DNA of 64,000 nt from Octopus bimaculoides (GCF_001194135.2 NC_068998.1:49602259-49666258), one strand, 5' to 3'; counted from the stretch's first letter, positions 3,724-59,334 are shown. The notes: generated by a model not told the origin, from the letters alone. Made by a program: numbers and translations.

Positions 3724-6700
3724 TCACACCAAGGTAGATATAATAGGTATCATGAATATGATGTGAGGTTTCATAATGCCAGGCAGGCTAGCGGTCGAAT
3801 TTGCTACGTTAAGAAAATAGAAAAACAATTATATTTTAATGCTCATCAAGCATTTCGATTTCAATGCAATTTTAACTTCATGTCAACAAGATTAATATAT
3901 AAATGCTGATTTATTCTTTGCATGGTTAAATTCATAACAGTATATTTAAAGTTTACGAACTGATTTTTTATTCACCATTAAGGGTTACAGAAAGAGCGAA
4001 CAGACAAGGGGATGCACATAAAACGATAACCGAGGTTAAAAATTTAAAATATAAAATATAATAGATGACAATCCTGAAATGAGAGACGGGTGTAACCCCA
4101 CAAACAACGTTCAATCAGTGAACCCTTTATGATCATTTTCTTCTCCCTTAAGCAGACACATACACTCAACATGCTTGCCAATTTCTTTCATCTTTTCTCA
4201 TATACCCTGAGTGGTAAGTATCTCTCCTCCAGCCTTATTTTCCTTTTAAGGCGGAAAATTTAAAAAATTAACCAAACCAAGGCTGGAGATCTCTGTCACT
4301 ACTCCTTCCATGGGTGTTCTCCACACAACCTCTTTTTCCACAGCCACTACAGACAGAAAACACACCTTCCCTTGCCTGTTCAGAGGGGGCGGTGGAACAA
4401 TCTTTATTATTGTTTAGGAAGGCAGTTATACAATTCCCAAACGTGACAGTAGTTCTTCGACAGAAACTCACAATTCCGAAATACTGTTCCCACCGCATCT
4501 TAGCGAGTTTATCTCGAACTGGTAAGGCTCCTCGGTAACATTGCCAAACCAGGGAGCTTTGAAAGTCATCCAAAGGTCCCAGGAATAAAGCACTGAAGTG
4601 CCTATGCATATACTTCATACAAAATTTCTCAACGAGAGAATATACAGAACCATAAAACAGCTGACTTCCGAAATCGCTTATAATAATTAATTCGTTTTAT
4701 TGGCCACAAGGGCTAATATCAATTAAAAACATATAAGGACAAAGACAGGACGAAGGTTACAAAAGGTTTTGTCCGAAAAGGTAGGAAAGTTCGTCTAAAC
4801 AGAGGAAGAAAACGGAGAAAGATATAAATAAATAGATAAATAAATAAGTAGAACTCCCAAAGGGGGGGGGCGCTTCGAAAAGGCAAAGGTTACACGTGGA
4901 AAAACCCATAAAACCACGGGAGCCTGGTCAGAAAAAATAAGAAAGGGGTATAGAGCCCTTTCTCCTTTTACAATAATGATTTAAATTAGCTAAAATATTT
5001 CGTTTTCCAAGCACCTAAATTTCGTTTTAATGTTAGAGGGACATCGAATCGCATTAAGAAAGTATAACTTCTTTGTCGTGTGAAATATAATTCGTTGATA
5101 TTTCGTTTTTGCTTTATTTACTTTCTACTTTCAAACAATTTAAACACTGAAATAATTTTAAATAACATACCAATGCAGTTATCATGATGAAGCTTGGAGA
5201 AGTGTTTCGCACAGCCATGCTTCACTTTTCCTAAACAGGTTTCATAGTACTCCATACGGCTGCAGAGAATGAAAAAAAAAAAAAAAGAAAAATAGGGAAA
5301 TATACCAGAGGAAATACAATAATCTAGATAATAGTCATTTGCCGTCACAGACAGTACAACATGTCATGCCACTAAAATTAACAGAAATTACCACATGTTC
5401 TTGCAGGAAAAAGGTAAGTTAACTACGAATGTCTATTTTAATTTAAAGTTTAACTTAATTTTATTAATAGCAGTTTTCTCTACATATTGCATTTTTGTAC
5501 ATATTTTGATAATGTTTGTCAAAAAAAGAAACATTTAAAACAAGACACAAACATTCTTCTTTTGATGTATTTATCTAAAGTAAATTAAAATTTACCCAAT
5601 TTTAATTAGCATTTTTGTTCTTTTTCATAAATATATACTTACTCGTGTGCTAGTTCTACACATTTAAAAAAATTTTACTGTCTTAATGTTTTGCGCTCTT
5701 GTCCCATTCTGTATTATTTATATATATGTACTTAGCTACATAAAATGGAAGAGGAATGACACAATCGACCATTGCAGCGAGGCTTCCTTGGTTATTTGAA
5801 CAGATAATGAAAAGGTGTGTGGAGAATGGAGGTCATTCCAGAAAAATTTTGATTTATATAATTATGTGATTGTGTGTTTGTGTGTGTGTGTATGTGTGTG
5901 TGTGTGTGTGTGTGTGTGTGTGTGTGTGTGTGTGTGTGTGTGTGTGTGTGTGTGTGTGTGTGTGTGTGTGTGTGTGAGAGAGAGAGAGAGAGAGAGAGAG
6001 AGAGAGAGAGAAAGAGCGAGAGAAATAGAACGAGAGAGTGTCCCCGTTTGTGAATGTGTTTGTGAGAACGTTTGCTGCCTTCAGCGCTATATCATCAGCT
6101 TCATATGGAAAAATATTCCATCAGCATTACCCAAATGATGATGTCATTGGCTTTAAGATACATCCAAGACTTGGACCTTGTGCTATCTGCCCACATAAAT
6201 CATACCAGCTTCACATAATACAGCCCAATTATTTCACCTCAGTAGGACCGTTTCTTTTTACCATTACACTAAAACACACTAAAGGAGAAACAAACCCCAT
6301 AAATTTCAAGAAATCTTTGGACAATGTTTGGACAATTTCACTTCATTAACAAAAATAGAAAAATACAAGCTGTTGTAATAGAGGAGGTTGTAATAAGAAA
6401 ACGCATACAAACTTGCAGTACTCATTATCGGGTTTCTTTTTAGGAAACAGATCCATAGCTTTTGGGCACACCTTCTTGCCTTCTTCGGGGCAATTTTCTT
6501 GCGCAGTGATCCCTAAAAAGTTTAGACATTTTAAAAATGTTACGTGGCACTGATAGAACATTCGGTGAAATCTTAGCAACTTAAAATTTAAGACATCTCT
6601 TACAGAGATAAAGAAACAATAAAAGTAACGAACATTGAGAGTATAAATGAAGCGGATGGGTTAATGAGTTATGTCAAAAGAAAGAGTTAAAAGGAGAAAG

Positions 6701-7341
6701 AGAGAAAGAGAGATGTGAGAAATACTGAAGAAAAAGAGAAAGAAGAAGCAGCATGTTAAATAGATGAAAAGGGAAATGTAAATAAACAGGAGGGAGAGAG
6801 AAAGAGAGTGAGTGAGTGAGTGAGTGAGTGAGTGAGTGAATGAGAGGGGAGAGAGAGAAAGCAAGGGAGTAAGATGCAAGAAATTTGTGGACTAAGAAAA
6901 GGAGGGCGGTAAAGAGATGTAACGAAAGATATTGGTTGCAAATGTGGCGCAATGCCAGCAACAATTGGGGAGATGGTTAAGTCCATTACATGACTCCAGT
7001 ACTCGACGTGTATTTGTTTTATCGACGCCAAAATGATGAAAGGAATTTTCGAACTTGATGGAATATGAATTCAGATCGTAAAAAACAGTTGAAATGCTTC
7101 GCCCGGGGCGCTAACGTTTCTGCTTTAGAAAGAGAAATAGTAGCTAAATATAATGGGGAAGAAAAAATTAGGTAAATGGGAAGGGAAAAGCTAAGGGAAA
7201 ATAAAGACATACACAGGGAAAAGTGAGAACGCGTTATTTATGCAAAAATTCAAAACAAATGTTCTTGTCAACATGAAGAAGGCTTTCTCACAGTTACTTA
7301 CCAAAAATGAAAAGAGCTAAGAAAAGAGTGATGGTTTTCAT
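3724..7341 (-). CDS. G1: 102-aa secreted six-Cys protein with GPI-signal-like tail (4 coding exons)
   Basis: Exons 7302-7341, 6413-6512, 5171-5259 and 3724-3803 (40+100+89+80=309 nt), all GT-AG, intron phases 1/2/1. Protein: MKTITLFLALFIFGITAQENCPEEGKKVCPKAMDLFPKKKPDNEYCNRMEYYETCLGKVKHGCAKHFSKLHHDNCIANSTASLPGIMKPHIIFMIPIISTLV*. Frame, splice sites and all Cys are conserved in the G2 copy. Confidence 0.88.
4268..4960 (-). mobile_element. L1/Tx1-like LINE fragments inserted in G1 intron 3
   Basis: DDFQSSLVWQCYRGALPVRDKLAK resembles the zf-RVT region that follows RT in L1/Tx1 ORF2. 4680-4960 reads like a LINE 3' UTR ending AATAAA/(TAA)n on the minus strand. The segment is absent from the homologous G2 intron (451 nt vs 1367 nt). 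Confidence 0.65.
5870..6030. repeat. Compound (GT)n(GA)n microsatellite in G1 intron 2; representative of many CA/TA/GA/TAGA/TACA/trinucleotide tracts (e.g. 3449-3498, 7743-7808, 8469-8545, 10790-10905, 15737-16050, 17190-17267, 19220-19586, 58163-58251, 61555-61770, 63835-63895)
   Basis: Directly visible perfect and compound simple repeats. Confidence 0.97.
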
Positions 7342-58500: not shown

Positions 58501-59334
58501 NNNNNNNNNNNNNNNNNNNNNNNNNNNNNNNNNNNNNNNNNNNNNNNNNNNNNNNNNNNNNNNNNNNNNNNNNNNNNNNNNNNNNNNNNNNNNNNNNNNN
58601 NNNNNNNNNNNNNNNNNNNNNNNNNNNNNNNNNNNNNNNNNNNNNNNNNNNNNNNNNNNNNNTATATAAATTATAGGAAGGACAAAATATATTGATAGGC
58701 ACTGGAACAAAAGAAAAACGTCAACATTATCCGGTCATATATGGTCTTTAAAAGATAAAGGTGTCAGTTACAACATCCATTGGAAGATCCTAGCCAAGTG
58801 TAAACCTTACACCAGCGGCAGCGGAAGGTGCGGTCTATGTGATATGGAGAGATGACTCATCTGGAAAGGCAGCTTAGACCCCACCACATGTCTAAATTCT
58901 AAGTTTGAACTTTTCGGATCATGTCCACATGTGGCTAAAAATTTGCTACGTCTTTGGTCCCCCTGAGTTTACTGATTGGACTTGCTTTCTATTTTTGTGT
59001 CTATCTATAAGCTTTTTATCTCTCTATAATTATTACTTACATTTCTTATATATTTTAAAAATATTTTTTAATAATAACAGGCAATGCTCCAGCATGGCCA
59101 CACTCAAATGACTGAAAGAAATAAAAGAATAAATGAATACATAAATACATAATTACGTATGTGTCAGTGTGTCTGTGAGATGACAGATGATAAAGAAATG
59201 CTTGGCATCTTGCATCTTAACATCTCACGTAAAATGGTATTATCTTCCACAGAGATACGATGGTGATGACAAACAATATCAGTATATGCTTACTTACCAA
59301 CGATCAGAAAAGGTAAAAGTATAAAGAGCTTCAT
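55536..59334 (-). CDS. G7: six-Cys paralog of the 5-exon subfamily; exon 2 unresolved (possible pseudogene, or exon in gap)
   Basis: Exons 59298-59334 (MKLFILLPFLIV), [exon 2 ?], 56861-56948 (SYKVYHSCFNDINDFCTGYFKFVNYHMCL), 56346-56378 (HPLTDASNNDA) and 55536-55595 (TLLYSIIISAAVIIVFSRM*). Sizes and phases are identical to G6. Confidence 0.75.
58690..58950 (+). mobile_element. Penelope-like element GIY-YIG endonuclease C-terminal fragment in G7 intron
   Basis: TLSGHIWSLKDKGVSYNIHWKILAKCKPYTSGSGRCGLCDMER*LIWK...CLNSKFELFGSCPH matches the typical PLE pattern (HIW.LK..I.W.I..PY..C.LC..E..LN...E...C.H), with an internal stop. Confidence 0.8.

Follow-up and report, generated by a model that had tools for sequence, protein, structure and literature searches.

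We analysed a 64-kb window of the Octopus bimaculoides genome (CM046618.1:49,602,259-49,666,258, assembly GCA_001194135.2) and found that its minus strand harbors seven real paralogous genes for small secreted-type proteins that share a conserved six-cysteine domain. Three of these genes (genes 1, 2 and 4) were already known as RefSeq loci, each named "uncharacterized protein"; new are the four unannotated genes (genes 3, 5, 6 and 7), the definition of the family and the likeness of its domain to RGM_N, the N-terminal domain of the repulsive guidance molecules (RGMs). Our best overall explanation, to which we give a probability of roughly 55%, is that the window belongs to an octopus cluster of small modules that resemble RGM_N and are attached to the membrane by a glycosylphosphatidylinositol (GPI) anchor. 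The seven units had been proposed in a first-pass annotation made from the same sequence, and we report below which parts of that proposal stand.

Exon architecture and annotation of the seven genes

A six-frame scan of the window for the proposed cysteine spacings, in which microsatellite translations were set aside, returned six C-x7-C-x14/16-C pieces and seven C-x7-C-x11-C pieces, which together define the full framework C-x7-C-x14/16-C-x8-C-x7-C-x11-C of the units. The first-pass annotation had put the units on the same strand without saying which; all of these pieces are on the minus strand. Exon 1 (37 or 40 nt, beginning with ATG, encoding MK followed by a hydrophobic stretch, and ending at a GT[AG]AG donor) was found in all seven units, as was exon 3 (x7-C-x7-C-x11-C, flanked by AG and GT), which is 89 nt long in genes 1-5 and 88 nt long in genes 6 and 7. 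Exon 2, also flanked by AG and GT and running from phase 1 to phase 2, was found in six of the seven units, with lengths of 100, 100, 94, 100, 100 and 94 nt. Joined in silico, exons 1-3 gave open frames with the phases that had been proposed. Furthermore, when we searched all six-frame stop-free pieces of the window with a hidden Markov model (HMM) of the family, exactly these 13 exon pieces were returned at E<0.05, all from the minus strand. Since most window exons were in the building alignment of the model, their own matches are to be expected; gene 7 exon 3, which was outside that alignment, scored E 1.4e-6. The 13-exon result is far beyond chance, and with the splice-site evidence it bears out the original claim of same-strand units with repeated exon lengths, phases and cysteine spacing. 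Elsewhere in the window, we found neither other family exons nor a large open reading frame (ORF) of another gene.

The further claim that all seven units share one architecture holds for exons 1 and 3, and has to be qualified for gene 7, in which neither the ORF scan nor the family HMM found an exon-2-like piece in the readable sequence from exon 1 to exon 3. To judge from its sister gene 6, this exon is probably in or at the edge of the assembly gap that lies between them (Table 1): exon 2 of gene 6 is immediately upstream of a trinucleotide microsatellite and a gap, and in gene 7 a (CTT)n repeat (58184-58251) comes immediately after the gap. A 94-nt ORF at 57241-57148 was rejected as exon 2 of gene 7, as it has the wrong cysteine spacing and no score with the family HMM.

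The terminal exons are verified by RefSeq proteins for genes 1, 2 and 4 only. Those of genes 1 and 2 are homologous to each other (…NST…GIMK[PS]HII…V*), and genes 6 and 7 share homologous 19-codon hydrophobic terminal exons. P0035, the annotated RefSeq paralogue closest to genes 6 and 7, is split into five coding exons, the last of which (19 codons) is preceded by a linker exon of 42 nt; at the equivalent place, both genes contain a 33-nt open exon with strong splice sites. Judging from this correspondence, a 33-nt linker exon very probably has to be added to each of genes 6 and 7, giving five coding exons instead of four. The four-exon model of the first-pass annotation thus probably misses one exon in these two genes; it stands for the three genes with RefSeq-verified ends. 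For gene 5, there is a good candidate for the terminal exon (Table 1), which is preceded by a strong acceptor (ttttttctgtatatttcag) and encodes a tail like that of genes 1 and 2. Two other hydrophobic ORFs, GLVPIVEMILFIVLVR (22883-22834) in gene 3 and GLVLLVEIIINPFE (37608-37565) in gene 5, were rejected as terminal exons, as both belong to an interspersed repeat that occurs in either orientation; such repeat-supplied ORFs (…LVPIVE…) mimic the terminal exons of these two genes. A further candidate in gene 3 (22119-21974) was rejected for its poor acceptor and the 27 residues that follow its hydrophobic stretch. We found no convincing terminal exon for gene 3 in the window, and a comparison with O. 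vulgaris showed no conserved one.

It had also been suggested that the family could be largely hidden from annotation. This is true of genes 3, 5, 6 and 7, which are absent from every protein collection searched, and untrue of genes 1, 2 and 4. Genes 1, 2 and 4 each have an identical RefSeq protein; for gene 1 (LOC106870879), the identity covers the full length and the terminal exon, with the RefSeq start 12 codons upstream of ours. Since four of the seven copies in a single 64-kb window escape current annotation, family counts based on annotated proteomes are too low. A search of the literature library available to us returned no paper with the LOC or XP identifiers of the family, and nothing relevant on an octopus GPI-anchored or cysteine-rich tandem family or on an RGM expansion. 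The protein-linked records for P0001, P0004, P0012 and P0035 were genome records only, with no transcript contigs.

Family extent and sequence divergence

On the chromosome of the window, RefSeq lists some 25 other paralogous loci, again under the name "uncharacterized protein". Nearly all single-domain O. bimaculoides members are located on this chromosome, where they span at least 365 kb. The eighth member of the array lies on the same strand 2.9-4.9 kb beyond window position 1 (CM046618.1:49,597,375-49,599,337), with a 37-nt exon 1 encoding MKCFIVISAFIV and a 100-nt exon 2 encoding GVTTLHICFDKASVRCPHAIKMYPLRAPDMYFCR. The array thus runs on past the edge of the window. A second sub-cluster about 290 kb away (CM046618.1:49,301,386-49,324,731) contains P0039, P0035 and P0034 in the orientations -, + and -. 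In O. vulgaris, the members have near-consecutive accession numbers and are on one chromosome. There are also multi-domain relatives with 2-8 tandem domains, among them P0005/P0041 (LOC128248155), P0006, P0008, P0010 and P0014. The eight-domain relative P0005/P0041 is located on another chromosome, has no hydrophobic tail and is predicted to be secreted; in the three- and four-domain relatives, a GPI-like tail is retained. For O. vulgaris, some of the multi-domain models may join adjacent genes into one.

We searched the domain profile against 1.84 billion representative proteins and obtained 38 hits at E<=1e-3, of which one (P0036) is a spurious repeat protein, leaving 37. The source or name was seen for 32 of these representatives, and all 32 are from O. 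bimaculoides, O. sinensis or O. vulgaris; thus, no homologue outside Octopus was found at this cutoff among the representatives of known source. A further search with a profile of 57 domains, for which 37 candidates passed the word filter, brought in no species outside Octopus. Within these searches, the family is confined to Octopus.

The copies evolve fast. Identity between the window copies is 23-57%, with genes 1 and 2 at the upper end (57%); the ratio of nonsynonymous to synonymous substitution rates (dN/dS), calculated from small counts, is 0.93 for genes 1 and 2 and 0.57 for genes 6 and 7; and between paralogues, exons are about as identical as those parts of the introns that can be aligned. 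This is in agreement with the initial description of the copies as hypervariable, with little identity beyond the shared framework. The closest protein found in O. sinensis shares only 53-62% of its residues with genes 1 and 2; no other family member was found within 10 kb on either side of its locus. When gene 3 was compared with the O. vulgaris locus of P0012, its closest relative, the 5' flank and exons 1-3 were alignable and the introns were not. Because the exons of gene 3 are conserved against O. vulgaris and its introns are not, these unannotated exons appear to be under some constraint. At least genes 3, 6 and 7 have a TATA-like motif 55-75 nt ahead of the start codon, in keeping with independent promoters.

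These data bear on whether genes 3, 5, 6 and 7 might be decaying pseudogenes or chance ORFs, with only the RefSeq-modelled genes being functional. Such a reading would account for the absence of the four from the protein collections, the high dN/dS values, the missing exon 2 of gene 7 and the lack of a convincing terminal exon in gene 3. However, all readable exons are open, and their cysteines, exon lengths, phases and AG/GT sites are kept; gene 3 shows the exon-specific conservation just described; genes 6 and 7 retain matching linker and terminal exons with strong splice sites; and the missing exon of gene 7 coincides with an assembly gap. We therefore regard decay as highly improbable for these four genes.

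The six-cysteine domain, its likeness to RGM_N and probable membrane attachment

Among 57 copies of the domain, the spacing C-x7-C-x16-C-x8-C-x7-C-x11-C is almost invariant; four of the six cysteines never vary, and the remaining two occur in at least 90% of the domains. Aside from the cysteines, a YP…PD..YC.RL stretch and a near-invariant Phe four residues after Cys5 are conserved. AlphaFold2 gave a mediocre three-helix model when run on seven sequences (predicted local distance difference test, pLDDT, 76). Run on 57 sequences, it gave a confident model with a mean pLDDT of 86.7, in which 51 of the 69 residues score at least 90 and helices are predicted at residues 8-15 (with 18-22), 32-45 and 51-66, that is, three main helices and one short helical turn. 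The domain is thus modelled as a small bundle of three main helices with three predicted disulfides.

The first-pass annotation did not recognise the family by name. We found a recurrent weak similarity to one Pfam family, RGM_N (PF06535), which was hit by 26 of the 57 single domains at E<=1 (best E 1.3e-4), other Pfam families being hit by at most two domains each. Two of the multi-domain relatives score above the RGM_N gathering cutoff of 24.2 bits (P0006, 37.9; P0010, 29.1) and a third falls just below it (P0014, 22.2). In a sequence search of the PDB, RGMB chains were the only hits of the first family profile (E 0.35) and the top hits of the second (E 0.046), and hhalign, run against the RGMA and RGMB N-terminal domains as they appear in the PDB search output, gave P=3.9e-4 over 33 columns. 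By inspection, the two families share the motif D-x-x-[FY]-C-x-x-L-x-x-[YF]-x-x-C-x7-C, which runs from just before Cys3 to Cys5. When the family domains were scored with an HMM of RGMA/B, the real sequences averaged 6.1 bits, versus a mean of 1.1 bits after the non-cysteine residues had been shuffled with the cysteines fixed. The resemblance therefore exceeds that of the cysteine spacing, the p-value of this control not being a true probability because the domains are related to one another. The RGMB N-terminal domain has three helices and three disulfides, and clasps the fingers of GDF5/BMP2 through its helix 2-3 linker and helix 3 (PMC7354924). Three helices and six cysteines are thus found in both, and RGMs are GPI-anchored as the octopus proteins appear to be from their GPI-like ends. 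On these sequence comparisons, the octopus domain is slightly better explained as a homologue of RGM_N, the domain of RGMA, RGMB and hemojuvelin (PDB 4UHZ, 4UHY, 4UI1), than otherwise.

A number of observations weigh against this relationship. Of six window proteins, three match RGM_N weakly (E 0.025-0.17), and at 12.6-15.6 bits none reaches the gathering score. The hhalign probability is only 36%, and the aligned part is the middle third of the domain, from Cys3 to Cys5. The spacings C1-C2, C2-C3 and C5-C6 are x7, x16 and x11 in the octopus family versus x4, x22 and x21 in RGM. The RGD/RGN loop is not conserved, RGMB having C-R-G-N-L-V-Y-H where the family has C-x-x-[YF]-F-x-x-x, nor is His106 of RGMB, which contacts BMP/GDF, kept in the family; the only contact feature in common with RGMB is the hydrophobic residue at Cys5+4, Phe here versus Leu103. 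A Foldseek search of the PDB with both AlphaFold models returned no RGM chain and nothing at E<=0.001, which is a weak negative, very small helical domains being hard for the method. Finally, one relative (A0A0L8GPX5, P0011) bears the automatic UniProt name "GDNF/GAS1 domain-containing protein", after a different helical cysteine-rich family.

Given these points, the domain might instead be an independent, lineage-specific invention within the architecture described above, its resemblance to RGM_N reflecting convergence of disulfide-stapled bundles and telling us nothing about a binding partner. The failure of Foldseek to match RGM with a confident model, the scores of the window proteins below the Pfam cutoff, the confinement of the alignment to the Cys3-Cys5 stretch and the absence of a non-Octopus homologue at E<=1e-3 among the representatives of known source would all be expected under convergence. 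It leaves less well accounted for that RGM_N is the only recurrent family, reached by nearly half of the domains and by two relatives past a curated threshold, that residues other than cysteine add to the score, and that six cysteines, three helices and a GPI or GPI-like link occur in both. We consider convergence a serious alternative, clearly less probable than a distant relationship with RGM_N.

Any homology of the domain would not extend to the whole protein. Full-length RGMs have an RGM C-terminal domain, an autocleavage site and a Neogenin-binding part, and the octopus proteins are without all three: no match to RGM_C was found in the family proteins, which have 92-115 residues and one domain (or 2-8 repeats in the relatives). 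The family proteins are not RGM orthologues.

Other families were compared as well. GDNF/GAS1 (GFR-alpha-like) proteins are helical, cysteine-rich, GPI-anchored co-receptors of cystine-knot ligands, with domains of about ten cysteines and five helices in GFR-alpha. The octopus proteins are similarly helical, cysteine-rich and GPI-like; however, GDNF/GAS1 (PF02351) matched none of 16 full proteins (E<=10) or 57 domains (E<=1), P0011 included, and this assignment was rejected. Ly6/uPAR proteins are small GPI-anchored proteins with a signal peptide, encoded in fast-evolving tandem clusters, and have a beta-rich three-finger fold of 8-10 cysteines. The octopus genes might be taken for divergent members of this group on account of their small products, signal peptides, GPI-like tails and tandem arrangement, which are typical of Ly6 genes, but their domain is predicted to be all-helical, has six cysteines in another spacing and gave no UPAR_LY6 hit (E<=10 for full proteins, E<=1 for domains), so the chance of such an origin is negligible. 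Insect-type odorant-binding proteins are also helical with six cysteines, and have the spacing C2-x3-C3 and C5-x8-C6; the octopus spacing and the lack of a PBP_GOBP match led us to reject this reading, and saposins and other carrier families were rejected as they gave no Pfam match.

In most single-domain members, the C-terminus is a stretch of 11-17 hydrophobic residues without charge, followed by no more than three further residues; small residues are found 8-13 positions upstream of the hydrophobic end, and a basic cytoplasmic tail is lacking. The signals of GPI-anchored proteins have small residues at the omega site, then a polar spacer and a hydrophobic end, and no cytoplasmic tail follows. 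Because of this short uncharged end, the small residues and the missing basic tail, the C-terminus has the form of a GPI signal rather than of a transmembrane anchor. A simple GPI rule was passed by 28 of 53 sequences comprising family proteins or isoforms and the gene 6 and gene 7 models, among them genes 1 (with the tail IIFMIPIISTLV), 2, 4, 6 and 7. Weighing against anchoring, the rule is home-made and is neither a trained predictor nor an experiment, and the candidate tail of gene 5 has an internal Arg and eight extra residues; moreover, six relatives or isoforms (P0005, P0012, P0013, P0018, P0024 and P0048) are without a hydrophobic end. The GPI-like termini attributed to all units at the outset are thus found in genes 1, 2, 4, 6 and 7 and most of the family, with gene 5 atypical and some relatives tail-less. 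Judging from these ends, the proteins are probably GPI-anchored.

The tail-less members, the pass rate of about half under the GPI rule, the atypical candidate tail of gene 5 and the lack of a convincing terminal exon in gene 3 would also suit a family of mainly soluble secreted factors, such as pheromone-like proteins, mucus peptides or carriers, whose hydrophobic ends are removed pro-pieces or weak anchors. We think this quite unlikely, since most single-domain members, including five of the window genes, have tails of GPI form, and no Pfam match to odorant-binding proteins, saposins or other carriers was obtained.

If the family is indeed a cluster of GPI-anchored, RGM_N-like modules, it might work as follows. 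The locus would be part of a large tandem cluster on one chromosome, each gene having its own short promoter-proximal block and encoding a protein of about 100 residues, with a signal peptide from exon 1, a domain of about 55 residues from exons 2 and 3, a short polar linker and a hydrophobic C-terminal end of 11-17 residues. The protein would enter the secretory pathway, where a GPI anchor would replace the tail, and a single small helical module would be displayed on the outer face of the cell membrane; tail-less paralogues or isoforms would be secreted, and others would string together 2-8 domains. Because the domain is most probably a distant relative of RGM_N, the module by which GPI-anchored RGMs hold BMP/GDF ligands, the proteins could serve as binding modules tethered to the membrane, with a secreted protein, possibly a member of the TGF-beta superfamily, as ligand. 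The family would have diversified by duplication and rapid change in sequence. Binding of ligands in the RGM manner, suggested by analogy with RGMB, is nevertheless doubtful, and the suggestion in the first-pass annotation that the array is a recognition system (immune, gamete, chemosensory or neuronal) is speculation by analogy with other arrays. A more far-reaching scenario, which we put forward as a long shot, is that the ligand-binding head of an RGM-like ancestor gave rise to a diversifying array of minimal GPI-anchored modules at 30 or more loci over at least 365 kb, together with multi-domain secreted forms. The modules would form a combinatorial code at the cell surface, or would tune TGF-beta-family or other secreted signals, in some tissue peculiar to the lineage, for example the nervous system or the suckers.

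Cephalopod novelties are often tied to lineage-specific, tandemly expanded gene families, and to our knowledge few small secreted or surface families have been described in cephalopods. In the portion of the literature available to us, octopus protocadherins, C2H2 zinc fingers and G protein-coupled receptors (GPCRs) are likewise large clustered lineage-specific expansions; they differ from the present family in being unrelated proteins that are described there and have expression data in hand. The present family offers a starting hypothesis, being compact, clustered, fast-evolving on a rigid cysteine scaffold and probably membrane-tethered; since it may derive from a known growth-factor-binding module, the binding of ligands at the cell surface becomes an idea that can be tested. 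Its significance is limited in that the RGM link is no more than suggestive.

Coordinates, assembly gaps and repeats

The coordinates of the genes and of the runs of N are given in Table 1. The match to CM046618.1 was exact over the first 17,377 bases of the window (as the reverse complement of the compared stretch). The window is AT-rich (34.5% G+C) and abundant in microsatellites, and contains ten runs of N, none of which overlaps an exon. Therefore, the reading frame across the gaps is not in question, and what depends on the scaffold is which exons join across them. In gene 4, the same join is made by the RefSeq model P0003; in genes 3, 5 and 6, the joins follow order, strand and phase only.

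Table 1. Window positions of the seven genes, their exons and the runs of N
Feature	Position	Strand	Remarks
Gene 1 (LOC106870879, P0001, 114 residues)	3724..7377	-	Exact match to P0001; splice sites
Gene 1 exons	7341-7302, 6512-6413 (100 nt), 5259-5171 (89 nt), terminal 3803-3724	-	Terminal exon includes stop
Gene 2 (LOC106870881, P0002, 102 residues)	14819..17812	-	
Gene 2 exons	17812-17773 (40 nt), 16758-16659 (100 nt), 15438-15350 (89 nt), terminal 14898-14819	-	
Gene 3	23106..26866	-	
Gene 3 exons	26866-26830 (37 nt), 24859-24766 (94 nt), 23194-23106 (89 nt)	-	
Gene 4 (LOC128249883, P0003, 109 residues)	31374..34509	-	
Gene 4 exons	34509-34473 (37 nt), 33722-33623 (100 nt), 32818-32730 (89 nt), terminal 31477-31374	-	
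Gene 5	36579..40513	-	
Gene 5 exons	40513-40477 (37 nt), 39931-39832 (100 nt), 38170-38082 (89 nt)	-	
Gene 5 candidate terminal exon	36700-36579	-	Inferred; EGKSSKNEALSYVKSPHKLLMVLILRHMVLCFENPLTRKS
Gene 6	47120..53222	-	
Gene 6 exons	53222-53186 (37 nt), 49880-49787 (94 nt), 48592-48505 (88 nt)	-	
Gene 6 probable linker exon; terminal exon	47746-47714 (33 nt); 47179-47120	-	
Gene 7	55536..59334	-	Incomplete
Gene 7 exons 1 and 3	59334-59298 (37 nt), 56948-56861 (88 nt)	-	
Gene 7 probable linker exon; terminal exon	56378-56346 (33 nt); 55595-55536	-	
Runs of N, intergenic (n=5)	8633-9213, 29353-29362, 29703-29733, 42095-42659, 54040-54508		
Run of N, gene 3 intron 1	25611-26451		
Run of N, gene 4 intron 1	33755-34292		32 nt upstream of exon 2 acceptor
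Run of N, gene 5 intron 2	39558-39818		Begins 13 nt past donor
Run of N, gene 6 intron 2	48828-49508		
Run of N, gene 7, between exons 1 and 3	58252-58662		Expected site of gene 7 exon 2

The RefSeq start of gene 1 is an in-frame upstream ATG at 7377, 12 residues before the MK start (MSIFSTKQDLIK, 7342-7377), and this upstream extension is conserved in the O. sinensis relative P0004 (MSIFSTKQDSIK). The stop of gene 2 is shared by a 147-residue product in the gene table of the current assembly (window 14819-17377), P0002 having 102 residues, which suggests a differing 5' end or an isoform in the newer annotation relative to the older RefSeq protein. The TATA-like motifs read TATATATGACA in genes 6 and 7 and CTATATAAGAC in gene 3 (59286-59473, 53174-53361 and 26818-27005, minus strand), and an element similar to GAATATCCA is common to genes 3-7 immediately before the ATG.

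Microsatellites border most of the assembly gaps, such as (GTA)n/(AGC)n by gene 6 exon 2 (49511-49769), (AGA)n/(CTT)n at the gap-bordering repeat of gene 7 already mentioned, and (TA)n or (AT)n elsewhere, which suggests that the gaps are simple repeats left unassembled in a short-read assembly. Copies of interspersed repeats are located within and between the genes (26452-26746, 31720-32023, 22850-23036, 37430-37616 and 38573-38663), and one pair of them forms an inverted 304-nt match with 90% identity.

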